64,000 nucleotides of DNA from Tubulanus polymorphus. Taxonomy: Eukaryota > Animalia > Nemertea. Where the stretch lies: contig NC_134033.1 of the NCBI RefSeq assembly GCF_964204645.1, forward strand, positions 3,554,131 to 3,618,130, written 5' to 3'. The notes under the pieces are model-generated. The model was given only the letters and a program-made list of their open reading frames with translations, did no database searches and was not told where the DNA came from. Numbering within the stretch: position 1 is the stretch's first letter; every line of letters starts with the position of its first letter. This document shows positions 18,195 through 62,878 of the stretch, piece after piece. The position numbers and the translations under genes were made by a program.

Positions 18195-19028
18195 ATGGCT
18201 GGCAGGCAGAGCACTTCACCCCCGAGGAAACAACCTAAAACCAGTGGAACATCAAGAACGAATCAGAATCGGCAGCCGCAGCTAATACCAATCTCGGACA
18301 AGCAGCTACAACAAATTCTGGAACAGAAGATACCGACGGAGAAAACGGCATCGCGCGAGGACAGTGGAATATCAACGAAACTTGACGCGATTCTGTCTCA
18401 ACTCGGGAAATTAGAACTCTTAGACGATTTACAGAAAGATATGAGCGAAGTTAAGCAGTCGCTAGAGTTCTGCCACCAAGACGTTCTGCAATTGAAAAGC
18501 GAAAACACGGTGCTTAAGAATAGAGTGAAAGAACTAGAGCAAATCGTAGCGAACCAGGAGACCATCGTCAAATCAGACCACGAACTCTTGCTCGACCAGC
18601 AATGGCGCAGTATGCGGGATAATTTGATTTTTTACGGCGTTGGAGAATCCGATGGTGAAGATACAGAAAATATGGTGCGAGAATTCTGTATTCACGATCT
18701 AAAGCTAGCAAAAGAATCTGTCGAGGCTATCGAGTTTGCGCGTGTCCACCGTTTAGGAAAAAGAAAGAGCGATCAAAAAAAACCGCGTGCGATAGTGGCG
18801 AAGTTCGAACATTTTAAGGACAGAGAATTAGTGCGCTCTGTCGCGAGGAATCTAGCCGGTACTTCGTTAGGCTTGAGCGAGCAAGTTCCAGAAGAGTGGG
18901 CCGCACGTAGACGCGACCTGTTACCGGAACTGAGGGCTGCGAAAGCCAGCGGAAAACACGCGTTTTTCGCCAGGGACAAACTTGTTATCCGAGATCGCCG
19001 GGAACGTGCTGCCATGGATAGCAGCTAG
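18195..19028 (+). CDS. LINE ORF1 (coiled coil + L1-ORF1/Transposase_22-like RRM)
   Basis: Heptad-rich region, then RSMRDNLIFYGVGE..IEFARVHRLG..PRAIVAKF..RR.L.P.LR.AK..GK.A.F..DKL.I. Confidence 0.9.
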   Translation: MAGRQSTSPPRKQPKTSGTSRTNQNRQPQLIPISDKQLQQILEQKIPTEKTASREDSGISTKLDAILSQLGKLELLDDLQKDMSEVKQSLEFCHQDVLQLKSENTVLKNRVKELEQIVANQETIVKSDHELLLDQQWRSMRDNLIFYGVGESDGEDTENMVREFCIHDLKLAKESVEAIEFARVHRLGKRKSDQKKPRAIVAKFEHFKDRELVRSVARNLAGTSLGLSEQVPEEWAARRRDLLPELRAAKASGKHAFFARDKLVIRDRRERAAMDSS

Positions 19029-19073
19029 GATGCAGCGGAGGGTTTTATACGTGTTGAGTATATCGATCGGACG

Positions 19074-22000
19074 GTGATTTTTGCGAAGGGTCGATGCTAT
19101 GCGCTAGACTTTGTGAATAGTTTTGCTCTTTTTGGCAACAATCCTGATGTAAATAGCAAAAATGACGAGTTAAATAATGAAATAAGCGAGTCTGTTGTAA
19201 ATAATGGAAGAATAGAGTTTGATGTATATAATGAAAGGTGCAGTTTTGATGTAAATAACGAAAGAAGAGAGTTTGATGTAAATAATGAAATGAGCAGTTT
19301 TGATGTATATGATGGAGTAAATAAAAATGTTGTCCCTGTTGTAAATATAAAAAAAACTAATTTGGATACTGATAACCTTAATTTTAATGAAGACAATGAA
19401 GTAGGCGTAGGTGATGAACAGTCGATTAAAGATATTAAATTTGTAAGTCTCAATATTTGCGGTATTAATAGTAAACTCGGTGTCCCTGAATTTGATGATT
19501 TTATTAGTAGCTATGATTTTGTATGTTTAACTGAAACCCACCTCGACGATGTCGATGGAAATCTAACCAATGATTTACCCGGTTCGTATGTGTCACATTT
19601 TAAAAACAGGAAAATAATTTCGAAAAGGAGTTCAGGTGGAATCGGTATAATTTATAAGAGTTGTTTAGATAGTAAGATTGAACCATTATCAACTGATTGC
19701 CCTTTTGTATCCTGGTACTGCTTAGATAAAAGTTTGTTTAACTTCGACAAAAATGTACTCTTAGGTGTAGTTTATATTCCCCCTGAAACAAGTAAATATT
19801 ATTCGAATAGAGCAATTAATGAAATAGAGTTAGAATTATTACAGCTAAAGATTGAAAATGATTTTAATGTACTAATTACGGGTGACTTTAATGCTCACAC
19901 TTCGTGTATACCAGATTTTATAGAGCCTGATAATCAGATAATAGACGATAATTTACACCCCACTGTTGATTCACAGCTTTTATTTAGCTTAGACATTCCG
20001 ACTGTAAGAAATAATCAGGACAAAAGAACGAATAACACAGGCTATCAGTTAATTGATTTCTGTAAGAATCATTCATTAATTATACTCAATGGCAGATGTG
20101 GCGGGGACCAGTCTGGTGATTATACTTTTAAGGGAACTAGTGTTATTGATTACTTTGTATGCGATATTGACCTGTTTGAATATGTTTGCGACTTTCAGAT
20201 AATGCCTTTTGAACCGCTATTGTCTGATGGACATAACTCTCTTAGGCTTTGTTTAAGCAGAAATTCTAGGGACACTATTATTGCTGATAATGCTAACAAT
20301 GAGCAGGTAAATGGAAAGCCATCAATTAGATGGGACAATAGTAGATCAGATCAGTTTTTCGCGACAGTAGAATCAAGATTATATGACATTGGCCTCAATG
20401 ATTCACTTATGGATGGATTGCAGGACCCAGGTAGTCAGTCTCTAAACAAAGTAAACGAACTCACTGATAGATTTGTATCTTCCCTGGTGTTAAGTGCCGA
20501 AGAATGTAACTTGGTGCTCAATAGGAAAAATAGAAGACGTAGAAGCCCGGTTCATAACAAGTGGTTCAATCGTAGCTGTAGGGATGCGCGTAAAGATTAT
20601 AATTATAATAAAAACAGATATAGAGGCTGCCCCACCCCTTCTAACTTTGATGCTTTCAAGAACTCGTCAAAGAAATATAAAAAAATCATCCGGGAAAGTA
20701 AGAGAAAACAGAAGGAAACTTTTATTAAAGAACTACGAGATTGTGAAGTCAATAACCCGAAAAAGTATTGGGCTATGCTTAATTCTGCAACTTATGCAAA
20801 AACTAAGGACGCTAATATTGATATTGATATCTTTCTTGAACACTTTATGCAATTAAATGACTTAAATGGTGTAAACGAAGGGAACGATAATATTGAACAA
20901 CAGAATGATGATCCTCCTGTATATGACAACCATATTTTAAACTGCGACATAACAGCTGATGAAGTAATGAAAGCTATCTCATTGCTTAAGAACAATAAGG
21001 CACCTGGTATAGATGGAATCATTAATGAGTTATTAAAATTTAGTCGGTATCCGTGCTTAGTTAATATATTACGAAACCTGTTTAATTTAGTTCTTAAGAC
21101 TGGACATGTTCCGGAGACGTGGTCTATAGGGATAATTAAACCTGTTTTTAAAAAGAAAGGCGATCCCACTAATCCTGATAATTATAGAGGTATAACACTA
21201 GTTAGCTGTCTTGGTAAATTATTCACAAGTATCCTTAACCAAAGGCTGTCAACTTTTCTCGATTCAAACAATATAATTAGTGAAGCACAGGCCGGATTTA
21301 GACCAAAATATTCTACTACTGACCATATTTACGCGTTGAAAACAATCGTCGAATTGTACTTATGTCAAGGAAGAAGACTTTTTTGCGCCTTTGTAGATTT
21401 TAAGAAGGCTTTCGACTCGGTTTGCCGGGTTACATTATGGAGAAAATTGATAGAGAGTAGCATTACGGGGAATTTTTTGAACGTAGTTAAAAATATCTAT
21501 AATTCGGTGAAATCATGTGTTCAATTTAACGGAAACACATCACAGTATTTTGCTGCTGATAGAGGTTTAAGACAAGGTGAAAATTTATCACCTATCCTAT
21601 TTTCCTTATTCTTAAACGATATTGAAGACTTTTTTGCTACGCGCGGTAAACCAACTTTGTCGTATATTGAAAAGCTTAATGTGAATTGTGACCCAGAACT
21701 AGGGACTTTACTTAACTTATTCATTATCCTTTATGCGGATGACACAGTCATTCTTGCTGAAGATGAGGAATCTCTCCAGTCACATTTGGATACATTATTT
21801 GAATATTGCGCCGACAACGGCCTCACGGTGAATGTTGATAAAACTAAAATATTAGTCTTCGCTCGAAGTAAAAGTAGGATTAAGCGTATTTCGAAATTCA
21901 TGTTCGGTAATCAGGAGTTAGAGTTAGTTGAGGATTATGTGTATCTCGGAGTGAAATTCAATTGGAACGGTAGTTTCGCTAAAGCAAAAAAATTTCTCTA

Positions 22001-22889
22001 TGATAAAGCTATGAAAGCTATGTATTCTATTATTCAAAAGGGCAGACGTTTGAAACTTCCAGTAGATGTAATGTTTAAACTATTTGACATGTGCGTCGCT
22101 CCTATCGCGTTGTACGGTTGCGAAATCTGGGGATATGAAAACCTTGACTTATTAGAAAACCTCCACTGTTTATTTTGTAAAATTATCATGAAAGTTACAA
22201 AATATTCCCATAACCTTCAAGTATTAGCAGAGTTAGGACGTTATCCTATGTATATAAGCGTAAAGCGTAGAATGATTAATTTTTGGGTCAAAACGATAGA
22301 GTGCAAACAAAGTAAACTTAGTTCAATTCTCTATAAGATATCTTATAATTTATATCTGAATGATAGGTTTAAGAGCCCCTGGCTGTTATTTATTAAGAAG
22401 ACTTTTGATGACTGTGGCCTTTCGTATATATGGACACAACAATCTATGGTAAACTCTAGGACTTCTCCAAAACAATTACACCGTTTACTCCGTGATCAGC
22501 ATGTGCAAGAGACAGAATTTAGGCTAAATAATAACCCGTTATACATTAATTTTAGACAATATAAGAAGGATATCAAATTTGAAAACTATATAAATCGGCT
22601 TGATGACGACTTAGTGACCAGCTTATTCCAGTTCAGGATTGGTTCTTATCTCCTACCTGTAAATAAATTGTCAAATCTCCATCTACCGAGAACCGATAGA
22701 TTATGCCCCACCTGTAACGTTTTAGGCGACGAACTACATTTCATTTTTGACTGTAAATTACTTACCGTATTCCGTGAAAGCTACCTAAATTCAAATACCT
22801 TTCGGAATCTTGATGTTTTAAAAAATCCAACTTTTAAACTTGCTAAATTTATCAAATTAGGTCTGGATGTATATAGATCCCTCCGGTAG
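19074..22889 (+). CDS. LINE ORF2: AP endonuclease, reverse transcriptase, C-terminal Cys/His finger; start uncertain
   Basis: SLNICG, LTETH, GDFNAH, SVIDY, SDGH (APE); NYRGITL, FVDFKKAFDSV, GLRQGENLSP, LYADD, YLGV (RT); RLCPTC..DELHFIFDC. Confidence 0.97.
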   Translation: MIFAKGRCYALDFVNSFALFGNNPDVNSKNDELNNEISESVVNNGRIEFDVYNERCSFDVNNERREFDVNNEMSSFDVYDGVNKNVVPVVNIKKTNLDTDNLNFNEDNEVGVGDEQSIKDIKFVSLNICGINSKLGVPEFDDFISSYDFVCLTETHLDDVDGNLTNDLPGSYVSHFKNRKIISKRSSGGIGIIYKSCLDSKIEPLSTDCPFVSWYCLDKSLFNFDKNVLLGVVYIPPETSKYYSNRAINEIELELLQLKIENDFNVLITGDFNAHTSCIPDFIEPDNQIIDDNLHPTVDSQLLFSLDIPTVRNNQDKRTNNTGYQLIDFCKNHSLIILNGRCGGDQSGDYTFKGTSVIDYFVCDIDLFEYVCDFQIMPFEPLLSDGHNSLRLCLSRNSRDTIIADNANNEQVNGKPSIRWDNSRSDQFFATVESRLYDIGLNDSLMDGLQDPGSQSLNKVNELTDRFVSSLVLSAEECNLVLNRKNRRRRSPVHNKWFNRSCRDARKDYNYNKNRYRGCPTPSNFDAFKNSSKKYKKIIRESKRKQKETFIKELRDCEVNNPKKYWAMLNSATYAKTKDANIDIDIFLEHFMQLNDLNGVNEGNDNIEQQNDDPPVYDNHILNCDITADEVMKAISLLKNNKAPGIDGIINELLKFSRYPCLVNILRNLFNLVLKTGHVPETWSIGIIKPVFKKKGDPTNPDNYRGITLVSCLGKLFTSILNQRLSTFLDSNNIISEAQAGFRPKYSTTDHIYALKTIVELYLCQGRRLFCAFVDFKKAFDSVCRVTLWRKLIESSITGNFLNVVKNIYNSVKSCVQFNGNTSQYFAADRGLRQGENLSPILFSLFLNDIEDFFATRGKPTLSYIEKLNVNCDPELGTLLNLFIILYADDTVILAEDEESLQSHLDTLFEYCADNGLTVNVDKTKILVFARSKSRIKRISKFMFGNQELELVEDYVYLGVKFNWNGSFAKAKKFLYDKAMKAMYSIIQKGRRLKLPVDVMFKLFDMCVAPIALYGCEIWGYENLDLLENLHCLFCKIIMKVTKYSHNLQVLAELGRYPMYISVKRRMINFWVKTIECKQSKLSSILYKISYNLYLNDRFKSPWLLFIKKTFDDCGLSYIWTQQSMVNSRTSPKQLHRLLRDQHVQETEFRLNNNPLYINFRQYKKDIKFENYINRLDDDLVTSLFQFRIGSYLLPVNKLSNLHLPRTDRLCPTCNVLGDELHFIFDCKLLTVFRESYLNSNTFRNLDVLKNPTFKLAKFIKLGLDVYRSLR

Positions 22890-31740: not shown

Positions 31741-34700
31741 ATGTCGCGCCAATCCTTCGTAAATCGATTTCTTCTACTGATCGTCTGCACCGGTAGGTCA
31801 AAAACTATTTCGTTAGTTTCTTGCGCGGAAAGTTTACGATTTAGAGATTCGCATATATCAGCCGTGTTCACACTGTGTTACTTAATTTTACTCCGTAAGA
31901 ATTTAGTCCGTGTAAATCTAGTCCGTAAGAATTTAGAACGGACCGAGGGTGCACAACTTGCGAATGGCTCGTTCTAAATTGGCCCATTCTTTTTCAAAAC
32001 TGACGTATTTAGACCAACCAAAAGCTATGGTGGCTGATTCGGACCATACTTATGCCTACTCTGTGTACGGCTAGAGCAACGATAAAAAAGTTTTCACATT
32101 GGCCCGTTTTTTTTTTTGGTTTGATCGCGCGAGAATTCAAAAAGTTTGGTTTTCTCGCTTTTTGAAGTTTTGATATCTCACGCGACAAATGAAAAAAACG
32201 TAAAATATCTTTATCGTTCATCTAGCCGTACAGAAACATTTTTACAATAGCCCGTATCAGCCAAAATAAATAACCGTATTTTAGATTACTGACAGACGAA
32301 ACAAAACACTGATCCAGTTCTAAGTTTTCGATCGGACAGAGTTAGCTGTTAAGTCAGATTCAACTATTCTTAACGAAAACATTTTTCACTTAGAAATCAA
32401 AATATTGTATCGCCTCGTGTTTGCACAAGTAGAACTGCTATTTAAACGATTATTTCTTACGATATGTTGGGGCCTTATAATTGGATTAAGGGTTGTTTTT
32501 TTAAACAAATGGGATAAACAGTGAGATAAAAACCCTCTATGTACAGATTGAAAGTGTTTTAAAATTCAGGAATTTATCTAAACAAATAATTAAAAGCAGA
32601 AATAAGTTTCGATCTGGCCCTCGCTAGAGATCATCGCCAGGTGTCTGAACGCCTGGCGATGATCTCTAGGGCGAGATCGAAACGTCGCGTTCTTTTGATT
32701 TCTTGATTAAATAAATTCCCGATTTTTAAAACACCGAAGGAATACAGGGAAAGATTGAGAAATAAAGGATTTTGTATTTGAGGCGTTTCATTATACAAAT
32801 GGGAGGAACGAATGATAAGAAAATGTTAAGAAAAATCTAAAAGGGGTAAATTATTGTCATGAATTGAACCAAACGAACGAAAATAATAACTTTTTTGCAA
32901 GTCGCTTGATCTGAAATTACGAACGAAATATCCAGAAAAATGTTTTTTTCTGAAAAATTATCTTTAAAACAGAGAAAACCTAGTTCTTTTTGAAGGCTCA
33001 AAGTTTAATCTTTGTTTGTTAGATCGTTTCTGAGATCGATATTTCGCTTGTAATCTTGTTGTAATCTTTTGAATGCAAATGAATAAACAATCGTTCTGAA
33101 AAACCACTTTACAACGAATTGAAGGATTGCGGGATTGGTAACAGGGGTTCCTGCGGATCTAGGGAAATCGGGGAATTCAGGATTTAAAATTCCCCGCCGG
33201 AAAATCAGGGAATCTTTGCAGTTTCTCACGGCGATCAGGGCGTTCTGAAGGGTCTTGATTTTAATTGAAACTATCAATTTCATGCATTATTATTTCATAA
33301 ATCAGTAACACGTGTATATCACAGTGCAATAGGCCACACCTCATGTGATAACTTTGAATTGTTATAATTTGTCGTTTTTCAATTGTGGAAGATGTATTTA
33401 CGTTCATCCTCAGTTAAGTGAAATATAATAACACCCTTGCAAATGCGCAAAATGAAATCAATTTCTCAATTCCAGCTACATAATCAAATTATTTCCATCC
33501 TCTGCGATAACCTTTAACTTTTAAAACTGTTCCTAAATCATTTACATTCAAAATAAGATAATTATTTATCAAGCTATATAATATAAGTCCACGAACCGTG
33601 TTATTTTCAAATATTTTTGTTTCACGTTGGGTTTTGGTATATTCTGATACCCGTTGGATAAAAATGATTGCATCATCCGCGTTCCTATTGCCTGTTTGGC
33701 ATGAAACTGATCCAATAGATTTCACAATAAATCTGTATTTGTGAAATATATTCTGTTGTATCCTCGTTTTTGTATATGCGTTTTATCCTAACATAAAAAC
33801 ATAACACCCTTGCAATTGCGAAAAATGAAATGAAATTCTCAATTCCAGCTAATCGAATTCCCATCCTCTGCGATAACCTTTAACTTTTACACCTGTTCCC
33901 AAATCACTTACATTTTCAACCTCCTGATCATCTTCATTGTCTTTTCTACTCGTCTCTTGTTTCATTCGGTTAAAAGCAATTTTCGAGGTTAATTCCGAGT
34001 TTATATGTCGGAATAAACTAGTTTAATTTCTCAATTAAATGTGTGATTTCGTTTATTCCGGGTTAAAAACTCGGAATTAACCTAAAAAAAATTAACTGAG
34101 AAAATATATTTTATTCCCAGTTACAAACTAGGAACTAACCTCGAAATGTTTTTGCTTGGCCCTCATAGACTCATCCTTCTCTCTTTTTATATTTGTGCTT
34201 GTTGAAAAATGGTTTGTTTCTTTTTTTCTCTCAATAAGCCTGTCGTGTGCTTTCCGTAAAATAAATCTGAACTTGAACTTTGATTTTAACATCTGACCTT
34301 CATGTTTCATATGTATGCCTATGTTATGTATCATTTTTCATCTGAAAAATTGTATCCACATGGCAGAAGATCGCCGTCTTGCAACGTTTCTCGTGCCCAA
34401 AAAAGGTCATCTTTGGTGTGGATTCTGAGGCTTGAAGCTTCTTGCGATTAATAGAAACATCCACACGGGAACCCTTACATTCACTAAAAAGCCTGATATT
34501 CGCGGCTCAAGTCCTTTATCACGGGTTTACGGAATCGTAATTTCTTTGAATTTTAAGTAAGATTTGGCAAATTCGTTTTGGCAAAGTTTTTTCCGAACGA
34601 AAAACGCTTGTGTGATCGCGGCTGAAGTGGCAAGGGGCAGGGAGAAAAAGAGGGTCCACTTAAGTGGTTTATGGAAAGAAAACTAAATGCTGCCTAATCA

Positions 34701-37321
34701 TTTCAGATCATTTCATCGCGTCCCAACGATTTCCCGAATCTGGAATGACGAGTAGACGGTTCCCCGAATCTGGGATAACGGGTAACTCACGTGGGATGCC
34801 TGGCCGTAAAATTCCCGGAAGCGGCGACATCAAAAACAACCAAATGATCAGAGATTACGAAGTGGCATCAGGGAAAATAGATGAACATGGAGATTTAGTT
34901 CGAGTTTGTCCAGCCACAGGTTGTTTGGCAGATTTATGTACTTGCGGACTGTTTAACAACTGTTGTGACCTGATTGGAAAGTGCGTCATGAGAAGCGACG
35001 CGGACGAATTGAGGCGTAACAAAACGATACAACAAGTTCAGTGGACCGACTGTATATACGGAATCGGAATCGAGACGTATCAGTCAAAGGGTTTTATAGC
35101 GATCAGTCGATGCCCGAGTGATTTCGACTTGAATTCAGACGTGCGTCGCTATTGCGAATCGCCGTCCAGTAATCTAGCTACGACGATTCCCGTCTACATC
35201 GACGACTGGCTTCCCTTTAAGAATATGTATTGCGCAATGTGTCACGGGTTCAACGACAGTCAATACAAACCGGCTGGTCTGGTACTGCAGTGCACTAACA
35301 CCACACGAATCGATGACGTCATCACGAGCGTGCACAACAAGTCTTTAAGCGACGATACCGCGAAGGTTCGGCTGCCAGAAGATTGTCGTTTATCCTACGT
35401 GCATCACGGGCAAGTTCGCATGGTATTACAGCCGTGCATGCGCAGTAACCTACCCGTGACGTCACACTACTGCGACGAGTCAGCAGATCAAGACCTTAGA
35501 TCTAAATGCAGACGGGTTTTTAACCCGATATCAGCTGTAGTCGGTGGACGGGTGAAAATATATCGTAATTATTACTGTATGAAATGTGAACTGAGTGACA
35601 GCGCTTTAAACGAATCGACCTTAGTTTGTAACTATGATCAAACCGGCCAAAAAACATTCGGTTTGAACATCTTACTCGATTTCAGTCTCGCGAATGGCGT
35701 TGAATTTCGAACTGCGGGAATGCCCGTCATCTCGTGGGCGACGAAAGAGTTTCTCTGCTCTGAAACGAACGAAATATTCGACCAGGAGACGCGTAGATGT
35801 CGCAGATACGGCTGTTTAAGGGGACACCGACTTCTTGATACCGGCGAAGACAACGCCGTCTGTCGGCTTGTTGAGAACGAATGGCCTAGAATATCCGTAC
35901 GCGTGTATTTCTCTTTCTTTATTTCGTTTAACGAAACTCAGCGATTTGTTATGAAAAACTTCGGGTTTGAATTGATGTATTTCAAAGTGAATGGCTGCGG
36001 CGATGTCGATAAATCAAAGATTATAGAAATAGGAAGTTTATCATCTTTACTCAACGATTCATCATCCTACAGACGCGACTTCACGCTGACCAATCACGGA
36101 GAGTTTCTCGGTGACGTCACTATGGAATCAATCTTGAGCGAATACGAGGCGATGATCACGTGTCAATTCGGTAAAGATGGCAGTCTGGTGACCATTTCCG
36201 GTTACGAGTTGTCGACTACGAGTTTGACTAAGAATACTCGCTGTGACGTCATCGATACAGAGCCAGACGTAGCAAATGATATGACCAAAACTGGAAGTAG
36301 CTTATTTCTAGCCCAGTCCAACCCGTCGTTCAAATATTACAGAATTTTTCAAATTACCAGCGACGACGGGAAAACGCAAATAGTGAAATCTAGTAAATGT
36401 TCCACTAAAATCACCGACTGCGTGCGAGTGTATTCTAGTGAAGGAGTCATGGTTTGCAGACGAGAAAACGATTCAAAATTCAAAATAACGGTCAGTTCGT
36501 TATTTTCCGATCGCGATTTCCTGATTACGTTCACCTGTAGCTGTCTGTCCGTCGTCAGTATCGTGATAACGGTCGTAATCTACTTGAATATTCCCGATCT
36601 GCGAACTCTTCCCGGTAAACTCATCGTCAATCTCTGTATAACTCTCGCCGTGGCTCAAACTCTTCATATTTCCAGCCTGATCGGCGTTGATAATCGATTA
36701 CTTTGCGTGTCGATGGCCGCTGTTAAACACTATATTTGGATGGTTGTATTCGCGTCTATGGCCGCTGTTTCTATCCACATGTTCCTTACATTTTCCACTA
36801 TTCGTAAACTGATCGATTCTCCTAAGACGTTACTGTACTATCTACTATCAGTTTGGTTTTCTCCATTCCTCATTGTCGGACCCTGTATCGTCCTACACAA
36901 CACCGATACCACTCAGTACTCCGGTGCGGTTTACGGAAGCCCCGTTACTTGTTGGTTTAGTTCCAGTTTCTCCCTATTGATGGCGTTCGTTCTACCGATC
37001 GGTATTATCGATCTGGTCAGTATAATTCTATTCGTAGCTACAGTTTACTGCATTCACCGGTCATTTGCCGCGATGTCCACTTCTTCATCTAACGCCAAAC
37101 AGAAGAGAACGACCGCGTTCATTTTCTACCGGATGGCTTTAGTGACCGGGGTCACGTGGGTGGTCGGGTTCGTAGCGTCGTTCGTAAATAACGATTATCT
37201 CTGGTATTTCTTCAATTTGTTGAACTCGTCTCAAGGTTGTCTGGTTTTCTTGGCTTTCATCGTCAACAAACGAGTGTTCGATATGTGTCGAGCGAAATTC
37301 AAACTGGGTCAAACCCCTTAA
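31741..37321 (+). CDS. Methuselah/adhesion-like family-B 7TM receptor, copy A
   Basis: Exon 1 31741-31792 (MSRQSFVNRFLLLIVCT, phase 1) + exon 2 34707-37321. Cys-rich ectodomain (CTCGLFNNCC, FKNMYCAMC, YRNYYCMKC); 7TM with LRTLPGK, HYIW, YGSPVTCW, TGVTW..GF, LNSSQG..VF. Confidence 0.9.
32554..32734. ncRNA. Inverted pair of Penelope-type hammerhead-like motifs (second family)
   Basis: Plus arm AACGC-CTGGCGA-TGATCTC(tagggc)GAGATC-GAAACGTC-GCGTT (one core mismatch); a mirrored, more decayed arm on minus; outer ends GTGTTTTAAAA/TTTTAAAACAC. Confidence 0.6.
33545..33740 (-). pseudogene. Fragment of the CUB/CTL gene exon 2 (about 3270-3465) or of a paralog
   Basis: KSIGSVSCQTGN.N.DDAIIFIQR.SEYTKT..ETKI..NN.VRGLILYSLIN is shared. 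Confidence 0.9.
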
Positions 37322-41668: not shown

Positions 41669-44600
41669 ATGTGGCGCCAATCCTTCGTAAGTCGATTTCT
41701 TCTTCTGATCGTCTGCAGCGGTAAGTTGAATTAAACTATTCGTTAATTTCAATTCATTTCATAAGAAAGTACGTTAAGAATGTTTACAAATAGAACAAAA
41801 ATAAAATTGAGAACGTTTTTTACTACGGTCAAGCAAAGGCCAAAGGCAACGCACCCTTGAAAGGAAATTATGGGAGAAACAAGAATAATCGAAAACATAT
41901 TTTTTGCTCTCTTGGCAATCTCTTGTTCTTTCTTTCTTAGTCTCTTGCTCTTTGTTCATTTTTATAGAAGCCTCGATACTAGCAGCGTGGTTATCATGGT
42001 TGTAGATATTCGAGTCTATTTTAAGTCTGGATTGTAGTTATTTCACCCACAATCTCACTTTCGAAGAATTCTCTGAATATGGGTGGAAGTAATATCCTGC
42101 CGAAACGTCAGAACAAAATAATAACAAATGTTGTTTTTTTTATTTACGTAGACGAAATAACTATATTTAGCAGCTTTTCACACTGAACTATTCAGAGCAC
42201 ATGTCCACTGTTGTTAGATAGAGTTAGCTTAGAGTTATAATCAGTTCAATTTCAATGTTTTAACTTAAGAGTCGAATTAATTTTAGAACTCTGGAACTGG
42301 ATACAGAACATTCGTTTGGAGATTTATTCCGTGATCAAATAGAACGGACCAAGCGTTCACACAATTCTTAACGAAGATCAAATAAGATCCGTTCTAAAAT
42401 TTCGAATTGGTCATTTCTCATTGTGTAAATTATAGGAATGGCTTGTCGGTTGGTCTAATTCAATAATCATTTTGTATCTTACAGGGAAATGTTAAACATC
42501 CAAAGATTTATATATTGTATTCTCTCATGATAATACGAGTACAAACTCTTTTAAACCGTCCGTAAAGAAAAGACGTATGGTCAATTTCGGATTCGTATAA
42601 GCCTTTTTGATAACTGGAATAAATATTCTTTAACGCACAATGGAAGATTTATAAATGGGAGGGAAGAAGGGAAAATAGTTTCCTAAAAGATTGTTTATTA
42701 GAGGCGAAAAGAAATGAAACAGGGGAAAATATAAATAATACATAAATTTTTTTCCAAAATTGAAAAATATAAGGCAGTAAATATGTTGTTGAATTGACTT
42801 GAAATGATTGCAGAAATCAAGGAACCTAACTTTGAAGCTAGGGCTGCAAATCCTTAGATTGAAACTTATGAGGGAAAAATTTTTTTTCATGTTGAAAAAT
42901 TAAGTGAAGATGAAGAGAAAAATAGAAAAAAAATCCCAGTAACTAAAGAAGCCTGATTATTACGTGCGGTTCATGCCATTCAACATGTCGTCATTTGGGA
43001 GCACGCGGTTACAAGAAATTGTAATTTCATCGAATTTTTAGTTAGATTTTGCAAATTTGCCCGAAATTTGTTTGCACTGAATGGCGTCATATTGGACTTT
43101 ATCTGTGCATAAATTGCGTTTGAGCTACAGTTTAGGATCATTTATTGACGAGGGTATATAGTTGGCAGGGAGAAAACTGGAGTTCGTTATATGTTTATAT
43201 GTTATATGAAAGGTAACTATAGCCCGATTATTTCAGATCGTTTCATCGCGTCTCAACGTTTTCCCGAATCTGGAATGTCGAATCCTGAATCTGGGATAAC
43301 GGGTATCACACGTGGGATGCCTGACCGTAAAAATCCCGGAAGGAGTGATTTCAAAAACAACCAACTGATCGAAGCTTACAGAGTGGCATCAGAGGGAATA
43401 GACACGGATGGTGATTTGGTTCGGGTTTGTCCAGCCGCGGGTTGTTCGACTAATTCATGTACTTGCGGATTGTTTAACAATTGTTGCAACCTGATTGGAA
43501 AGTGCGACGCGACAAGCGACGCGGGAGAACTAATGCGAAACAAAACGATGCGACTAGTTCAGCAATGGACCGACTGTATATACGGAATCGGAATCGAGAC
43601 GTATCAGTCAAAGGGTTTTATAGCGATCAGTCGGTGCCCGAGTGATTTCGACTTGAATTCAGACGTGAAACGCTATTGCGAATCGCCGTCCAGTAATCTA
43701 GCTACGACGATTCCTGTCTACATCGACGACTGGCTTCCCTTTAAGAATATGTATTGCGCGATGTGTCACGGGTTCAACGATACTCAATACAAACCGGCTA
43801 GTCTCGTCCTGCAGTGCACTAACACCACACGAATCGATGACGTCATCACGAGCGTGCGCAACAAGTCTTTAAGCGACGATACCGCGAAAGTTCGGCTGCC
43901 AGAAGATTGTCGTTTATCCTACGAGCATCAGAGGATAGTTCGAATGGTATTACAGCCGTGCATGCGCAGTAACCTACAAGTGACGTCACACTGCGCCGAG
44001 TCAGCAGATCAAAACCTAAGGTCTAAATGCAGACGGGTTTTTAACCCGATATCAGCTGTAGTCGGTGGACGGGTGAAAATATATCGTAATTATTACTGCA
44101 TGAAATGTGAACTGAGTGACAGCGTTTTAAACGAATCGACCTTAGTTTGTAACTATGATGATCTAACCGGCCAAAAAACATTCGGTTTGAACATCTTACT
44201 CGATTTCAGTCTCGCGAATGGCGTTGAATTTCGAACTGCGGGAATGCCCGTCATCTCGTGGGCGCCGAAAGAGTTTCTCTGCTCGGAAACGAACGAAATA
44301 TTCGACCAGGAGACGCGTAGATGTCGCAGATACGGCTGTTTACGGGGACACCGACTTCTTGATACCGGCGAAGACAACACCGTCTGTCGGCTTGTTGAGA
44401 ACGAATGGCCTAGAATATCCGTACGCGTGTATTTCTCTTTCTTTATTTCGTTTAACGAAACTCAGCGATTTGTTATGAAAAACTTCGGGTTTGAATTGAT
44501 GTATTTCAAAGTGAACGGCTGCGGCGATGTCCATAAATCAAAGATTACAGAAATAGGAAGTTTATCATCTTTACTCAACGATTCATCATCCTACAGACGC

Positions 44601-45845
44601 GACTTCACGCTGACCAATCACGAAGAGTTTCTCGGTGACGTCACTATGGAATCAATCTTGAGCGAATACGAGGCGATGATCACGTGTCAATTCGGTAAAG
44701 ATGGCAGTCTGGTGACCATTTCCGGTTACGAGTTGTCGACTACGAGTTTGACTAAGAATACTCGCTGTGACGTCATCGATACAGAGCCAGACGTAGCAAA
44801 TGATATGACCAAAACTGGAAGTAGCTTATTTCTAGCCCAGTCCAACCCGTCGTTCAAATATTACAGAATTTTTCAAATTACCAGCGACGACGGGAAAACG
44901 CAAATAGTAAAATCTAGTAAATGTTCCACTAAAATCACCGACTGCGTGCGAGTGTATTCTAGTGAAGGAGTCATGGTTTGCAGACGAGAAAACGATTCAA
45001 AATTCAAAATAACGGTCAGTTCGTTATTTTCCGATCGCGATTTCCTGATTACGTTCACCTGTAGCTGTCTGTCCGTCGTCAGCCTCGTGATAACGGTCGT
45101 AATCTACTTGAATATTCCCGATCTGCGAACTCTTCCCGGTAAACTCATCATCAATCTCTGTATAACTCTCGCCGTGGCTCAAACTCTTCATATTTCCAGC
45201 CTGATCGGCGTTGATAATCGATTACTTTGCGTGTCGATGGCCGCTGTTAAACACTATATTTGGATGGTTGTTTTCGCGTCTATGGCCGCTGTTTCTATCC
45301 ACATGTTCCTTACATTTTCCACTATTCGTAAACTGGTCGATTCTCCTAAGATGTTACTGTACTATCTACTATCAGTTTGGCTTTCTCCATTCCTCATTGT
45401 CGGACCCTGTATCGTCCTACACAACACCGATACCACTCAGTACTCCGGTGCGGTTTACGGAAGCCCCGTTACTTGTTGGTTTAGTTCCAGTTTCTCCCTA
45501 TTGATGGCGTTCGTTCTACCGATCGGTATTATCGATCTGGTCAGTATGATTCTATTCGTAGCTACAGTTTACTGCATTCACCGGTCATTCGCCGCGATGT
45601 CCACTTCTTCATCTAACGCCAAACAGAAGAGAACGACCGCGTTCATTTTCTACCGGATGGCTTTAGTGACCGGGGTCACGTGGGTGGTCGGGTTCGTAGC
45701 GTCGTTCGTAAATAACGAATATCTTTGGTATTTCTTCAATTTGTTGAACTCGTCTCAAGGTTGTCTGGTTTTCTTGGCTTTTATCGTCAACAAACGAGTG
45801 TTCGATATGTGCCGAGCGAAGTTCAAACTGCGTCAAACCCCTTAA
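41669..45845 (+). CDS. Methuselah/adhesion-like family-B 7TM receptor, copy B
   Basis: Exon 1 41669-41720 (MWRQSFVSRFLLLIVCS, phase 1, GTAAGT) + exon 2 43237-45845; near-identical to copy A after the first about 110 codons of exon 2. Confidence 0.9.
42069..42113 (+). ncRNA. Degenerate Penelope-type hammerhead motif
   Basis: TTCT-CTGAATA-(imperfect stem II)-GAAACGTC-AGAA. Confidence 0.45.
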
Positions 45846-50927: not shown

Positions 50928-51278
50928 ATGAATACATATATTGAGTATATAGTCTATTTAGTTATATCACATCATTATTATCATTTAATTGATTGTTATT
51001 AAGTATATCCTTCAGTAATTAGATGTTAATTTATGAACGTTTCGATATGAAATTGTATGACGGTGACACTTTTAACCGAAATACGTTCAATCGAAATCTA
51101 TTCTATAGATGAATAATGTAAACAGCGGGTTCAATAGAATCACCATGCGAAACCAGTGACTTAATATGAGTAGGCTTAATTGTGAAAAGACTGGACAAAA
51201 AAGATTTGTCGGGGTAAATGTCTGCACTTTTGAGATGAAATGACTGAATTCTAAACTCTGTTTTTCAGTACATCTACT

Positions 51279-51902
51279 ATGGCGGAGACTAATCCGGAAA
51301 TAAATGTAGAAAATGCTGAAATAGTTCAAATCGGTGACAAAATGGCGGAGAGTAATCCAGGAATAAATGCAGAAAATGCTGAAATAGGTCAAATCGGTGA
51401 CAAGATGGCGGAGAGTAATCCGGAAATAAATGTAGAAAATGCTGAAATAGTTCTAATCGGTGACAAAATGGCGGAGAGTAATCCAGGAATAAATGCAGAA
51501 AATGCTGAAAAAGGTCAAATCGGTGACAAAATGGCGGAGAGTATTTCGGAGATAAATGCAGAAAATGCTGAAATAGGTCAAATCGGTGACAAGATGGGGG
51601 AGAGTAATCCAGGAATAAATGCAGAAAATGCTGAAATAGTTCAAATCGGTGACAAGATGGCGGAGAGTAATCCAGGAATAAATGCAGAAAATGCTGAAAT
51701 AGTTCAAATCGGTGACAAGATGGCGGAGAGTAATCCAGGAATAAATGTAGAAAATACTGAAATAGTTCAAATCGGTGACAAGATGGCGGAGAGTAATCCA
51801 GGAATAAATGCAGAAAATGCTGAAATAGTTCAAATCGGTGACAAGATGGCGGAGAGTAATCCAGGGATAAATGTAGAAAATGCTGAAATAGCTCAAATCG
51901 GT
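51279..51902 (+). repeat. Coding minisatellite, 63-bp unit x10
   Basis: MAESNPGINAENAEIVQIGDK repeated with no frameshift or stop. Confidence 0.97.
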
Positions 51903-54900
51903 GCGACTAATACAATAAATTATACAACAATAAATCAGTGCTGCCACCAAGATAAGCAAGGCATCGACAGACCTCCTCAGAATCTAGGTAATTATAGATT
52001 TCATGCATTTAAATTTTGGGCTCAGTTTTAGGGATGTGAATCGAGTCCGAATGTCATTTTAAATCATAAGACTGGTGTCTGACGCAATTGAGATTACTTG
52101 TCTCTCAAGATTCTGAAGTCCGAAATGAACCGGCACCCGATTCTTTTAAATATTAAAAGGAAAATCTTTTAGATTTAACCTGCAATGTAGCCTATGATTG
52201 TATTTTTATTTGGAAAATGAAATATGAAATCAGCATTTATCTGAAGTCGTAAATTCATTTCATTTTACAGATGTTACTCAAGTTCGGGAGTGTCTGGAAG
52301 AAACGTACAAACAAATGATCGATGTTGAATATTACAAAGAGGTTTGGTGGAGCGATAAATTCATAAATTTCCACGACTTCTTCACCAGAGAACACGTGAA
52401 AATTCGACCCCGAAAACGAAATCCGCTGAGATATGAAGAAAGCGAGGAACAATCAGTGATTTTACCCGATGATTTCAAGGAGCTTTTCGCTTATGATCAG
52501 CGCACTATGAAACGCGTATGCCTTGTAGGTGAGCCCGGTATGGGTAAAACAACCCAGATAATAAATCTGGTTTTAAGCTGGACGAGCTCACCGACGGAGT
52601 TTCTAAAGGGGTTTCCTATGTTGTTTTATATACCGTTAAATGATCTTCCCGCTGATAACGCGTGTATTTATAAGTATATTTTCGAAAATCTTTTGAATAA
52701 GAAAATCACAAAGAATCTGCCGGTTGATAGTTTTGAAAACTTCGTACACGACAATGCAGATAAAGCGATATTCTTGCTAGACGGCTTCGACGAGTTGAAA
52801 AACGACGAAGCGAAGAAAGACATCGTGAGTGTGACCAATGAATTAGCGGGAGCGCATATAGTCATAACAACACGTGAGTCCGGGGGCAGCATGATCGTCA
52901 CCAATTCTAAATTTACCATTGCATCGATATCCGGCTTCAAAAGGAAAGAGGTCATCGATATAATGAAGAGGAAATTCCCCCAGCGCGATGCACATCAGCT
53001 ATTCGACCTACTTAGAAGTAAAGCGTCACCTTTATTTCAAAGTAACTACTACAACCCGTTGATACTATACATGTTTTGTTTTCTCTATATGGACGAGGAA
53101 GAAATTACGGTCCCGTCCAAACTCACCGATATCTACATCGATTTGACATGTTTTCTGATCAGTAAACGCGAGGGCATTGATTTGTCATCTGGATGTTTTT
53201 TCGACGACATCGAAAATTCCGAAGCACTTAAACAAATTTGTAAGGTTGCGTACGAGACGCTCATCTCACATCAAAACAGCTTCAGTGAAAATCGTCTCAA
53301 ACCCTACGAATCGAAGTTGACGGCTTTGACGTGCAAAGAGATGTCGCCACGACAGAAATCAGACCGCTCCGTCCAGCTACGATTCATTAACAAATCTGTG
53401 CAAGAATTTCTGGCGGCGGTAGACTCAGTAGTACAATTCAATGAAAGTGGTGAAACACCCTGGAAAAAATGCGCGTTTGATCAACTACCGGACGAACTAG
53501 AAAAATATGGTGAATTATACCCGAGATTCATGGCAGGGCTGCTGCATCGTTACAAGCATAACCGCGGCCTCGGTGAACTTTTCAAGACTTTGATAGATGG
53601 AAATTTAAAAGCATTTACAATATGTGAGGGAGAATACTTGCGTGAATTGGCTTATAGAAATAGTTTCCTAATAGCGCTCGTCCCCGATTACGAACACTTC
53701 ATCGAACTCCAATCCGAAAGCTACGTATTATCTTATGAGTTATCGATCTACCTGAATGAAGCCGACTGGCCGGACGACGCCATCGCCGAAATATTTCAGC
53801 ACATGGGTAAAATGTTAATCGTAGATACATTTAGCAGATTGCAAATAAAAATGCTCGAAAAGATACTCGAACACAAACAATGCCCGATCGAGGTAGTTCA
53901 TATAAGAGATATGGCGAACGAACTGAAACCCGGCGGTTTTTCCGATGGTGAATACCGCACACTAGTAACAGCCATAACGAGAAACACAAGTGTTCAGGGT
54001 ATGATATTCGAGTCGTCGGACAAATATGATCCGTACTTGACGTTGTGCAAGGAGAGCAAGAGTGCTAACTGGTTTGTGTACCTAGATAGAAACAACATTG
54101 GTGTATGTTACAAGAAACTCGAATGTGGATGGTCTAGAACGAGTCGAGTGATAACAACTAAAGATCAGCTGACCAGACTTACCACACAAAATGTAGAAAG
54201 TCTGTTTATTAAAATTTCGAAGTACGGGACGAGATTTTTGGATGATGTTCTGGAACCTCATTCATTTGATTGTGGTTTTGATGAAAAGGGTCGATTGATT
54301 AAACCTGTTGATGAAGATCAGTCTTCCAGATGTGAAGGTGTGGATAGGCTGATCACTAAATGCGGTAGAGTAGCGTTTATTGAAATGACGACGAGATATC
54401 ATCCGATGCATGATGATTTTGATTCCGATTTTTTTGGGAAAAGACTATCGGTTTTATCTGATGATGAAGATCAGTCTTCCAGTAGTGAAAGTCTGGATAG
54501 GATGAGAATTTTTCACGATGATCAGACATCTTATCCATCCCTAAAGCATATCTCTTTTTCGATATCTACCGATAGTCACACATTGGTAAAGATGATTTGG
54601 GTGATGGTAAGGATATTGTCGAACATCGATGTCGAAACAGTTCTGCTCGATCTGGACACACTTACGACAAATCAATCGATAGAATTTAGCGATAGCGTCG
54701 GTTTAATGCCGAAACAAGATCTTTCTTGGTTAGGTCGCGACATTAGCGAATGTCTTAACCACATGTCGAAACTTAAGCACCTTGTCGTAAGAGGATTTGG
54801 TTTATGGTCCTATCAATTTCGGTGGCTGACTGTATTATCAATAGATTTGCGTTCAGAAGCTAATGGCGACGTGCTTGTTAGGTATCTAGAATCAGATGCG

Positions 54901-55224
54901 TCAAATGAACTGCGAGAAGTCGGTATTAGAAACTATTTTGTTGGAACGGAACAGCTCATTGTCATCTTACGACGACTTAAAAACGTTTCATCGCTTCGTA
55001 GGTTAGAGTTGGACGGTTTTTTTCATAGAGCGAGGCCTGATACACAGGACGGTATCGACGAAAACGTCAGAGCAATCGTCGACTTAATCGTCGGATTACT
55101 CTTTAATCTTCCTCAACTATATCACGTGTTTATCGGTTGCCAAAGTGCTATGATTAAAGACTTCGTCAAATCAAAACTTAAGGAAACAGACACACACAGA
55201 ATGAACGTTCATTTAGCGATTTAG
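51279..55224 (+). CDS. NLR-type NACHT protein with N-terminal array of ten RHIM-like repeats and degenerate LRR-like C-terminus (about 1220 aa)
   Basis: Exon 51279-51987 (donor G|GTAATT, phase 1) joins exon 52271-55224 (acceptor ttttacag) in frame: PQNL-D-VTQVRECLEETYKQM. Walker A GEPGMGKTT, Walker B IFLLDGFDE, VITTR, ISGF, NPLIL, FINKSVQEFLAA; C-terminal LKHIS/LKHLVV/LRRLEL motifs. Confidence 0.9.
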
Positions 55225-55865
55225 TTTCCCTGAACGAACAAACAACGAGGGATCCTCTGGACAGAGCAGAGCAGCGCTGATATCAAACTGTAATTCTCAA
55301 TAACCGGGCATGAAACTACACTAAACTTATTTCAGGTTCAACTTTCTAAGTTTATTTCGATGATACTAAGTTTAAACAAATATGTGTTTCATACATTTTT
55401 TTGATACCGTAAGTTTAAGCATTTACATGTCGAGAAAAATAATTGTAGGATGCCACGAGTTATGGATTATGCGAAAAGTTAATTTTCTGAAAGAAAATTC
55501 AACGAAAATCCTCCAGAAAAAATCTTATGGATAATGTATAGCTGCAAAGTAGCGATAACGGGTTTTCTGCAGCGGGCTGTGTAATTATCTAAGATTAGAC
55601 TTTGACTGTCGTATTTGTGTGTGTTCGTATTATAGAAGAATACGCGAATAAACGGAATCAAACTTAACGTTTTAAACCACATACAATAACTCATTGATAT
55701 GTTCATACCTTCTATTCTTTTCAAAATCCTACTTGTCTAACTTAGCATTTATGTAAATTGCTTTTCATGTCAAATATGGGTCATGGTTTCTCTTTCGACT
55801 ATAGTGACACCCAACACTGACTCTGGGTGTTTGTCCTGTTAACGAATTGTAACCATCTTAGCTCT

Positions 55866-59904: not shown

Positions 59905-62878
59905 TCAACATCTTCGATCCATTGTCATCGCTTCGAAATCCGCAACCGGCTGATTTATCTTCGCGGCCAGTTTTTGTTTTTGGCGCATTTTGTGCACGCA
60001 GCAACCGATCGCGATAAGAGTTATCAACGCCGATATACCTCCCAACGAGGTTATCACCGTAATAAGCAGTTCGTATTGATTTGCGGCTCGAGTTGGAGGT
60101 TTGGCGAGAAGTGGAGTAGTTTTTCTGGAAGGTTGGTCGGTTGAAGACGATCCAGTACCGGTAGTTGTAGCGGGTTGATTAGTTGAAGTCGGTTGCGTAG
60201 CCGATGGTTGAGCTGTGAATTGAGTAGTTGGTCGCGTCCTTGATTTAACGGACTGCTTTGATGTAGGAGCTGGTTTAGTTGTAGGAGCTGGTGTAGTTGT
60301 AGGAGCTGGTGTAGTTGTAGGAGCTGGTGTAGTTGTAGGAGCTGGTGTAGTTGTAGGAGCTGGTGTAGTTGTAGGAGCTGGTGTAGTTGAAGGAGCTGGT
60401 GTAGTTGTAGGAGCTGGTGTAGTTGTAGGAGCTGGTGTAGTTGTAGGAGCTGGTGTAGTTGTAGGAGCTGGTGTAGTTGTAGGAGCTGATGTAGTTGTAG
60501 GAGCTGGTGTAGTTGTAGGAGCTGGTGTAGTTGTAGGAGCTGGTGTAGTTGTAGGAGCTGGTGTAGTTGTAGGAGCTGGTGTAGTTGTAGGAGCTGGTGT
60601 AGTTGTAGGAGCTGGTGTAGTTGAAGGAGCTGGTGTAGTTGTAGGAGCTGGTGTAGTTGTAGGAGCTGGTGTGGTGCCAGCTTTAAGCGATTGATCGACG
60701 CTTTGCGCTTTGAAATCGTATTTAACGACGCACGGTTTCGGAGTGCCTTCGTCCGACGCTTCCACATAAATGATAAACCCTCCGGACGGAATTCCCCTCG
60801 TGACGGTTATCGATCCGTCTGAGGCGTTTATATTCAAACTAGACGCGTGCATCGTATTACCGGATATAGAATAGACGACCGTGCCGTTATTCCCAGAATC
60901 CTCATCGGTCGACGTCACTTGGACGATCGGGGCAGACGGAATCTCGTTCGCGGCGAAACTCACCGGCGCTGGAATCGGCGAGAATTCAGGACAATTGTCG
61001 TTTTCGTCTAGGATATCGACGGTCAGGGTCGCCGTGGTGCTTTTAGGAGGGAAGCCTTTATCCATAGCAGTAACGCTGATTAGGACACGGCCGCCGGACG
61101 CGAGGTAACGTTCGCGGTCGATCATCCCGATCGTGGAGATCGCTCCGTCTTTCGAATCGATGCCGAATGACGGGTTCGATCCAGTCGTCGATATCGAGTA
61201 GAAGATTTCCGCGTTCGGTCCGGATCCGTCGTCGTCGGTGGCCGTCGCGTTAAATACCGACGTTCCCAGACGACAGTTTTCGATCAGCGGAACGACTGCC
61301 CATGGAATCCCGGTAAAAACTGGATTGTTGTCGTTCGAGCTGGTCGTCTGACTGCAGTCGTTACCGTAAAAGCCGGTTTTACACTCGCACGTATTTTCAT
61401 CGACGCAGACGCCCGAATGCTGACACGGAGTCGAACACGTGGCCACGTCACATTTCAACGATGAGTTCCACCTGCTGTCGCAGGCGCAAACATCGAAACC
61501 CGTGCAAATTCCGTGTCCTAGAAAACATTAGAAATAGAGGGAATATATTAGTAAACAAGTAACTTGTAAAATCTTCTGAATTTAAGGGACCTGCTTTGAA
61601 GATCTGTGTTTAGAAGACCGAGGCCTGATTAGAGAACGAATGTGCAGTTCTTAGGAACTGGGAGGAGCCATGGAGGTCAGGGTTCCAGTTGAGGAGAAAA
61701 GATCTCAGTTTAGGAAACCAAGGCCAGGCTCGAAGAATCAGAGCAAGTTTGTGAGAACCAGGAGCAGGACCAGTTTAGCGGACTAGGGCAGAGTTTAGAT
61801 TAACAGGACCCGGTTTGAGTAAAGGAACCAGTTTCGAGGGCCAGGAATAACTTATCTAACCAGACTAAACGTTACCTGAACATTTCTGTATCGATTCGCA
61901 GCTGAAGCCGTCGCAGATCGTTCCGTTAAAACCGACGAAACAGTCGCACAGATTCGCTTCTTTACATCGACCGTGACCGGAACAATTTTTAACTTTATCA
62001 CACCTCGCGAATTCACACCGCGTTCCGTAGTAACCCGTGTAACAACTGTAAGAAGAAAAGCGAGACTCGAAATGAATTCGCAGTTTGGGATCTTCCACTT
62101 GGAAGGTACGCTTAAAAATTTGAATTTTCAACCCCTTTCGATTCCAAACTAGGTATCTTCGATTTAGTTTTCAACAAAATTATAGAAATTTGACTTCTAA
62201 AATAGTAGTTTGATTGAATTTAAAGACTATTTTGGGAGTATTTTGATATTTTGGAGAAATAGAGCTCTTTTAGTGGTTACTCTCAAGTTGTAGTTCAGGT
62301 TTGCTATTCTTTCCAATTCTTTGAGCATTATTGTGCGCATGTGCACTAACTCAGGGTGGTTACAATACAATTTAATTTGCTCTACCCCTGACTATTTAAG
62401 TCTCATTCTATCGACTAGAATCTCAATCTATGAACACAGACGAATACGTGAAACTATTAGCGTTCTTTACAAAATTCTTTTTTCAAGAGGAAATAATTCC
62501 TCCACTTTCCCTGTTTTCCAGATAAGTATAATCTATCCCATACCACCATTTTCGCTAATCCCCTCCTTCGCCCCACCGTAAGTGAACGTTTTAACCCGTT
62601 TGTAAATATTGTACGCGCGCACCTGCAGCTGGATTCTGAGGTCGTTTCGTTTTTCAAACAGATGCCACGGTTACTGCAGTCGTTGTTGTTCGGGCAGAGC
62701 GCCATCTGGCTGCAGTCGAGCGAGGTATAGCCGTCGTTGCAGGTACAGTTGTTCGGCGTGTTGCACGACCCGTGTTGGGAACAGTCATTCAGAGCGGAGC
62801 AGTCCGGCGTGGAGCACGCCGTACCCGTCCAATCCGGATAACAGTGACACACGTCGAAACCGATACACACACCCCGAC
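59905..62878 (-). CDS. Type I membrane protein: tenascin-like EGF repeats, two cadherin domains, PAPTTT mucin stalk, TM, short tail (5' partial)
   Basis: Exons 62878-62623, 62045-61876, 61517-59905 with consistent phases (1,2,1). CSGHGxC EGF repeats; cadherin motifs NDNNPVF, ATDDD, IDRE, AMDKGFPP, DENDNCPEF; TM LLITVITSLGGISALITLIAIGCCV. Confidence 0.9.
60262..60672 (-). repeat. Coding 18-bp minisatellite (PAPTTT) about 23 copies
   Basis: GGAGCTGGTGTAGTTGTA repeated on the plus strand. Confidence 0.97.

Follow-up and report, generated by a model that had tools for sequence, protein, structure and literature searches.

The gene LOC141910914 of the palaeonemertean Tubulanus polymorphus poses the question of what a NACHT-LRR (NLR-type) receptor may signal through when its N-terminus consists of a tenfold repeat of 21 residues that resembles the RHIM amyloid motif. 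The gene lies in a 64,000-nt stretch of contig NC_134033.1 (hereafter the window, to which all positions without a genome prefix refer), and comparisons within the species cover its genome of 268 Mb (G000). An initial annotation of this sequence had proposed an NLR that signals by amyloid nucleation, with the repeats in the place of a death-fold domain. Our analysis assigns the repeat to a family of modules, encoded by mini-exons in front of related NACHT genes, and leads to a reading to which we give a probability of about 0.5: LOC141910914 would be a RHIM-module NLR that signals by RHIM-type assembly, in which half of the motif has been multiplied by a young coding minisatellite and the complete tenth unit is the competent one.

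Gene structure and receptor architecture

Two open reading frames (ORFs) on the + strand, 51279..52031 (250 aa) and 52315..55224 (969 aa), carry the repeat and the NACHT domain, respectively. Splicing out 51988-52270 yields a single 3663-nt frame whose sole stop codon is terminal (counted by script). The RefSeq model of the locus (P0001, 1157 aa, "uncharacterized"), which is 100% identical to the NACHT ORF and second exon, has its junction at the same 283-bp intron (...RPPQNL/DVTQVRE...). Sequence and RefSeq junction thus agree on the phase-1 GT-AG intron through which the two ORFs had initially been linked.

51261..51268, + strand: acceptor-like relic, a polypyrimidine tract and AG (TTTTTCAG), 10 nt ahead of the first ATG
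51279..51908, + strand: ten tandem 63-bp units, 21-aa half-modules, consensus MAESNPGINAENAEIVQIGDK; an ATG opens every unit
51846..51987, + strand: unit 10 and tail, the sole complete module of the gene (..INVENAEIAQIGATNTINY.. ..RPPQNL), ending at the phase-1 donor
51988..52270, + strand: intron, 283 bp, GT..AG, phase 1; starts GTAATTAT, ends TTTTACAG
52271..55224, + strand: second coding exon with linker, NACHT, helical domains, LRR-like C-terminal half and stop; frame open throughout
52513..52980, + strand: NACHT NTPase (Pfam PF05729, 58.1 bits, E 1.3e-15)
52528-52551, + strand: Walker A, GEPGMGKT (sequence motif)
52774-52794, + strand: Walker B, LLDGFDE (sequence motif)
53668..55221, + strand: C-terminal strand/helix repeats, LRR-like, of ribonuclease-inhibitor type (AlphaFold2 and Foldseek)

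In the paralogues, TTTTTCAG is the acceptor in use, placed 11 nt before the module ATG and in phase 1 (V-x-x-T-M). In LOC141910914 the corresponding relic is out of frame for phase 1 and lies behind an in-frame TAA upstream of the array (51252-51254), and the array exon is therefore the first coding exon. The RefSeq protein starts at the Met of unit 4 and so contains 7 units. LOC141910914 is an intact gene encoding an NLR-type receptor; it is already annotated, with its N-terminus left without interpretation. For database searches, the exons were queried separately or P0001 was used for the full length, the exon join serving for the frame count only.

The assignment of the receptor body to the NLRs, made from the outset, is supported by the NACHT match in Pfam and by the structural comparison. 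The full-length AlphaFold2 model, calculated with an alignment, is poor overall (mean predicted local distance difference test, pLDDT, of 48) and contains a regular strand-helix repeat at residues 640-1157 (pLDDT 65-85); its best Foldseek matches in PDB are NLRC4 and NLRP2/3/7/9/14, at E ~1e-11 over ~1000 columns. The Pfam scan detected no LRR family in the protein. Nor did Pfam detect a CARD, PYD, Death domain (DD) or DED family when the protein and nine + strand ORFs from the preceding 5.4 kb (45.9-51.3 kb) were scanned, which agrees with the initial annotation as to CARD, DD and PYD; an upstream exon supplying a death-fold domain was considered and rejected on the same result. The RefSeq models of LOC141910914 and its closest paralogues begin within or at the module.

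None of the read runs is recorded as RNA. One contig of run X2 lacks precisely the 283 nt bounded by GT..AG, and the depth of X2 in the intron bin is zero. At the sole diagnostic site that it is shown covering, this contig carries the paralogue letter (51928 G), and the neighbouring intron and exon contigs carry paralogue letters at 51866 (A), 52202 (T), 52213 (A) and 52365 (C), together with small insertions at 52204 and 52207. All of these diagnostic letters belong to the sister gene at G000:C9:3484291 (LOC141911268); LOC141910914 itself has G at 51866, C at 51928 and A at 52365. The spliced contig therefore shows the sister gene, rather than the LOC141910914 copy, to be spliced at this homologous position; exact-match contigs of LOC141910914 cover 53886-55800 only. 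Thus the proposed 51987/52271 junction is present in the RefSeq model, whereas the contig from which the intron has been removed comes from the paralogue.

RHIM identity of the N-terminal modules

The receptor belongs to a lineage-specific family: the genome contains ~22 loci with this NACHT type, of which 18 have open frames, and the family includes several pseudogenes. Clustered directly upstream of the NACHT exons are ~35 mini-exons of 41-47 aa, arranged one to four in a row, which start with ..MA-x-SNPGIN.. and end with ..RPAENL at a phase-1 donor. Their family motif is ..INV-x-x-S-x-MVQIGDNNTMN..RPAENL, and the RefSeq proteins of the family differ in mini-exon number. Module subtypes read ..INVNQSKMVQIGDNNTMNVY.. 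or ..VNVNESMVQMGGNNTMNFY..; drifted forms read SIIGDNNT or RIGGNNN, and others have lost the core. The same NACHT-LRR body also occurs behind alternative fronts, namely a helical domain of 330 aa that matches nothing in Pfam (P0005) and an Ig-like ectodomain with a membrane anchor (P0008 and P0011). Searched against 1.84 billion representative proteins, the module profile found genuine relatives in Tubulanus polymorphus only; the sole foreign match, P0023, is a repeat protein and looks spurious.

At G000:C1:19744861-19749144 (L045), three identical module exons are spaced by exactly 2079 bp with no family NACHT within 20 kb; this trio is a tandem duplication of an orphan module.

The Pfam RHIM model (PF12721) comprises 22 positions and has a curated cut-off of 20 bits. 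The 250-aa ORF scores 12.0 bits against it (E 0.16), aligns to profile positions 3-16 only and remains below the cut-off, and single paralogue N-termini submitted as protein pieces reach at most 7.9 bits. A six-frame scan of all 268 Mb with the same model returned five matches above the cut-off, three of which are NLR module exons:

G000:C6:17608530: NLR module exon, 22.3 bits
G000:C6:18094833: NLR module exon, 22.3 bits
G000:C56:25435: NLR module exon, 21.9 bits

The remaining two are the non-NLR proteins at C3:26755833 and C8:4552388 described below, and the PF12721 scan of 14 control genomes returned no match. Unit 10 with its tail aligns to the Pfam-positive module L015 (BLASTP E 2e-13, 49% identity) and to the RHIM of the TRIF-like protein at C3:26755833 (L048; E 1e-3), to which module L015 is likewise similar (E 6e-5). 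This RHIM in turn recovers human RIPK3 RHIM fibril chains as three of its four PDB matches (7dac, 7da4 and 12kl), aligned at PLVNIYNCSGVQVGDNNYLTM. Because paralogous modules pass the cut-off genome-wide and align to the TRIF-like RHIM, which finds RIPK3, we infer RHIM descent. On sequence comparison, then, the Pfam criterion identifies the module family as RHIM, whereas the array units, which do not reach it themselves, are RHIM by descent. The RHIM identity initially claimed for the array holds through this chain of homology to Pfam-positive modules and RIPK3, but not for the units taken on their own, which represent half a module; the Pfam scan suggested at that stage gave a clear result for NACHT (58 bits) and not for RHIM (12 bits).

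Sequence and evolution of the ten-unit array

Tandem Repeats Finder delimits the array at 51279-51903, with a period of 63, 9.9 copies, 93% matches, 0% indels and a score of 1073. The amplified piece comprises 21 codons, beginning with the start Met of the module and stopping two residues beyond the tetrad; units 1-9 accordingly continue as G-D-K into the Met of the next unit, without the second half of the motif. This second half, G-x-x-N-x-[ML/I], is found in unit 10 only, as G-A-T-N-T-I (QIGATNTINY), and reads G-D-N-N-T-M in full paralogous modules, so that the retention of a QIG-x-x-N tail by unit 10 alone, noted earlier, is correct. The unit-by-unit listing of tetrads was likewise reproduced: five units (1 and 6-9) carry VQIG, three (2, 4 and 5) carry GQIG, unit 3 carries VLIG and unit 10 AQIG. 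The first of these, VQIG, matches the RHIM tetrad pattern [IV]-Q-[IVLC]-G. The longer motif INxENAEIxQIG, attributed to each unit, does not apply to unit 4 (ENAEKGQIG), unit 8 (ENTEIVQIG) or unit 3 (VLIG).

Unit 7 has the same sequence as unit 9, and unit 1 pairs with unit 3 as unit 2 does with unit 4, a pattern suggestive of a duplication step of 126 bp. Departures from the consensus comprise 8 synonymous changes (12.3 sites) and 22 non-synonymous ones (50.7 sites), corresponding to a ratio of non-synonymous to synonymous rates (dN/dS) of ~0.67, for which the counts are small and partly shared by descent; by this measure the array appears weakly constrained. The nearest paralogue, 84% identical in NACHT and 121 kb distant, has 2 units. 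The two-unit version is also present in a small protein encoded on C8; P0002 and the C8 small protein represent diverged lineages (at least two). Since both the nearest paralogue and the C8 small protein have two units, the two-unit state is the older one and ten units are specific to this gene. The array is young, a recent amplification of the first 63 bp of the module.

The array has a net charge of -32 and an isoelectric point of 4.05, with four acidic and one basic residue per unit; the matching stretch of one Pfam-positive module is about neutral. In-register stacking would superpose like charges.

AlphaFold2 gives contradictory pictures of the array. Run on the single sequence, it produced a regular solenoid in which positions 7-9 and 15-18 of each unit form strands, the best model reaching pLDDT 79.5 and a predicted template modelling score (pTM) of 0.75 and the other four 55-66. 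In the full-length run with a paralogue alignment, the same residues are helical, at pLDDT 20-45. Foldseek comparison of the solenoid model with PDB yielded nothing more specific than generic solenoids and LRRs, with E no better than 0.04. The initial suggestion of a pre-formed seed or beta-solenoid has its support in one single-sequence model, which the aligned full-length run contradicts.

Candidate RHIM-bearing partners

Within the window there is no motif-bearing non-NLR gene, as the initial annotation had reported for RHIM partners; the genome-wide search finds candidates elsewhere. At G000:C3:26755833 (L048:1087-2388:- and L061:8420-9721:-), a single-exon frame of 434 aa contains a RHIM that scores 26.2 bits in the genome scan and 21.7 bits as protein. 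It is laid out as a TIR-like part of 200 N-terminal residues, a coiled coil, the RHIM (..VINIYHAKGVQLGNSNTMTV..) and an acidic repeat tail. The TIR-like part matches TICAM2 by language model (0.91) and RHIM-bearing TRIF clusters by structure, with template modelling (TM) scores of 0.65-0.69. By these sequence and model comparisons, the protein is a predicted TRIF-like TIR+RHIM adaptor in a nemertean. The locus C8:4552388 encodes a proline-rich protein with a RHIM of 22.2 bits in the genome scan and 19.4 bits as protein. At G000:C7:3977744, a RHIM-like exon (L059:9140-9370:-) of 16-17.9 bits, sub-threshold, is preceded by a hydrophobic stretch and followed ~600 bp downstream by a Death-domain exon (L059:8319-8543:-; PF00531, 50.7 bits); the pair looks like an IMD/RIPK1-like RHIM+DD adaptor, possibly membrane-anchored.

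Two further proteins carry modules of the NLR type itself. P0021 (G000:C9:4828010, L041:2011-3494:+) combines two N-terminal modules, encoded by its first two exons and of another subtype than those of the array, with an NYN RNase domain (E 2.3e-17) and a MARF1-type RRM; its gene, located by tblastn, lies ~1.2 Mb from the window on the same contig. P0020 is a 119-aa protein made up of modules only (three units), encoded by a two-exon gene that is present in three segmental copies (L037-L039):

G000:C8:2386154-2387675: P0020 gene copy
G000:C8:3589904-3596087: P0020 gene copy
G000:C8:3807174-3808648: P0020 gene copy

Possible roles for P0020 are those of an adaptor or a decoy; it could also be a gene fragment. 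Separately, the intron after the module exons of P0021 contains a Maverick/Polinton-like element (DNA polymerase B ORF), of which there are related copies at L042 and L046.

Proposed mechanism and alternative readings

RHIM-type signalling by LOC141910914 is proposed because of the family motif, its position in the protein and the RHIM-bearing genes in the genome. Ligand-driven oligomerisation of NACHT would crowd the N-terminal modules; crowded modules could then enter an RHIM-type cross-beta assembly, and such an assembly might recruit other RHIM-bearing proteins, for which the TIR+RHIM protein, the RHIM-like+Death adaptor and the module-bearing NYN RNase are candidates. The complete unit 10 would act as the competent motif of LOC141910914, while the nine half-units may add valency, tune a threshold or be near-neutral passengers of a length-unstable coding minisatellite. 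Among readings of the array we rank valency or tuning first, followed by a neutral passenger, a solenoid seed formed in cis and, last, a Pirk-like brake.

Several observations weigh against this mechanism. The repeat of the array itself attains only 12 bits on a Pfam model whose cut-off is 20, and the module profiles A2 and A3 find no RIPK or other RHIM chain in PDB. The core varies within the array, with V16G in three units and Q17L and I15K once each, at a dN/dS of ~0.67, and the four acidic residues of each unit fall within the putative strands (net -32). Outside the NLRs, the module subtype of the array occurs only on the 119-aa module-only protein. Finally, the reads, from runs not recorded as RNA, give no support for transcription or splicing of this copy, the spliced contig being that of the paralogue.

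It is possible, if unlikely, that the array is functionless, a neutral or decaying minisatellite that arose by recent slippage or unequal crossover in the first exon of one fast-evolving NLR paralogue; the protein would then work, or fail, through the remnant of its last module, or be translated from a downstream ATG. Such an origin would account for units that are 93% identical, two of them fully so, for the dN/dS of ~0.67 with non-conservative tetrad changes, and for an ATG in every unit with the RefSeq start at unit 4; the other family members, several of which are pseudogenes, have at most 2 units. It fits less well with a frame that stays open across 630 bp plus the 2954-bp exon, with a period that is a multiple of three and 0% indels, or with the two-unit version being retained by P0002 and the C8 small protein, whose lineages have diverged. 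We consider it still less likely that the repeats of one chain stack on each other as a beta-solenoid or beta-arcade, each 21 aa forming a rung, and so provide RHIM partners with a built-in amyloid template. The period equals the rung length of HET-s, and the best single-sequence model (pLDDT 79.5, pTM 0.75) has this form; AlphaFold2, however, draws solenoids for many perfect repeats, the other four models stay at 55-66, the aligned run gives low-confidence helices and no specific PDB match was found. Covalent linkage of RHIMs should favour seed formation according to Kajava et al., who also describe same-charge stacking as avoided by non-identical coils (PMC4262963), whereas identical rungs would here pile up three to four acidic ladders. 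Equally doubtful is the extension of this idea in which the stacked beta-arcade would give the receptor an amyloid template (or cap) that is encoded in the gene and adjustable in length, the copy number of the minisatellite setting the signalling threshold.

By binding or capping RHIM assemblies, whether in cis or in trans, the acidic half-RHIM repeats might instead raise the activation threshold. The model for this function is Pirk/Rudra, in which an 18-residue repeat similar to half a RHIM occurs in several copies (PMC4262963). We regard this brake as improbable. The units do comprise the N-terminal half of the module only and are highly charged, and the 119-aa module-only protein with its three gene copies could act likewise, but the array is fused to the receptor itself. 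Least probable of all, and by a genome-wide RHIM scan already largely refuted, is a chance resemblance in I-x-QIG, a short motif of low information, with the N-terminus being simply disordered and acidic. The Pfam score below cut-off, the PDB profile searches without a RIPK chain and a model of only 22 positions would be consistent with chance; yet three of the five genome-wide matches above the cut-off are paralogous modules, and chance is an inadequate explanation for ~35 small exons in 268 Mb. Moreover, unit 10 is homologous to such a module at E 2e-13, and the modules match the TIR+RHIM protein exactly at its RHIM. Our preference thus remains with the RHIM-module NLR and its competent tenth unit.

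Other features of the window

Further features of the 64 kb lie on both sides of LOC141910914.

18195-22889, + strand: adjacent ORFs of 277 aa and 1271 aa, the second endonuclease-/reverse-transcriptase-like; an apparently intact non-LTR (long terminal repeat) retrotransposon
34664-37321 and 43191-45845, + strand: near-identical ORFs of 885 and 884 aa, with a cysteine-rich N-terminus and a multi-pass membrane C-terminus (adhesion-GPCR-like, GPCR denoting G-protein-coupled receptor)
59905-61458, - strand: ORF with cadherin-like repeats, a long mucin-like repeat of TPAPTTT after them, and a membrane anchor

The 885-/884-aa ORF pair is a recent tandem duplication just upstream of the NLR gene.

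Relation to known systems and implications

Amyloid templating from an NLR to its effector is experimental in fungi and proposed in bacteria, and in published profile comparisons the HET-s, PP and BASS3 motifs are related to RHIM. In fungal NWD2/HET-S and bacterial BASS systems, a short amyloid-type motif occurs both on the N-terminus of a NACHT or NB-ARC protein and on separate effectors, for which the NYN RNase is the candidate counterpart here. The nemertean system differs in that its candidate partner genes are not adjacent, in that the motif of the NYN protein is N-terminal, not C-terminal, and of another subtype, and in that any templating is putative. RIPK1, RIPK3, ZBP1 and TRIF have the same tetrad, [IV]-Q-[IVL]-G, as well as the upstream N and the downstream G-x-x-N-x-[ML] found in full paralogous modules. 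In contrast to these vertebrate proteins (kinases, a Z-DNA sensor and a TIR adaptor), the nemertean carrier of the motif is an NLR; the array units, moreover, contain only the first motif half and fall below the Pfam cut-off. Drosophila Pirk/Rudra, an inhibitor of the IMD pathway, which is a RHIM-like amyloid pathway, also possesses tandem half-RHIM-like repeats, whereas the nemertean array repeats the N-terminal half and is fused to a receptor.

RHIM-NACHT proteins of amphioxus with the RHIM in the death-fold position, together with two or three tandem RHIMs in some invertebrates, were described by Kajava et al. (2014; PMC4262963), so that the animal NLR initially put forward, with a RHIM replacing the death fold, has a precedent. 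The amphioxus proteins (for example Branchiostoma BF82280; known from sequence analysis only) have the same N-terminal RHIM where a death fold usually sits; in comparison, the nemertean family has shuffled phase-1 mini-exons, and the present copy has ten units, nine of them truncated, without linkers. New elements are the occurrence in this phylum, the organisation as mini-exon cassettes, the NYN RNase with its modules and the array of ten half-motif units. The family in T. polymorphus also corrects surveys that reported no RHIM in nemerteans, namely Lineus and Notospermus (PMC9835746), and no NLR in Nemertea (PMC11508797).

Animal RHIM amyloids are known from kinases and adaptors, and the RHIM-NLR combination only from the 2014 sequence prediction in amphioxus. 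With ~20 NLRs, interchangeable RHIM mini-exons, RHIM-bearing TIR, Death and RNase proteins and one natural allele with ten half-motifs, T. polymorphus offers a compact test system. Were the array to be stacked after all, it would be the first natural single-chain RHIM solenoid. More generally, the family raises the questions of whether an animal NLR may signal through cross-beta assembly and of how the number of motifs may affect nucleation.

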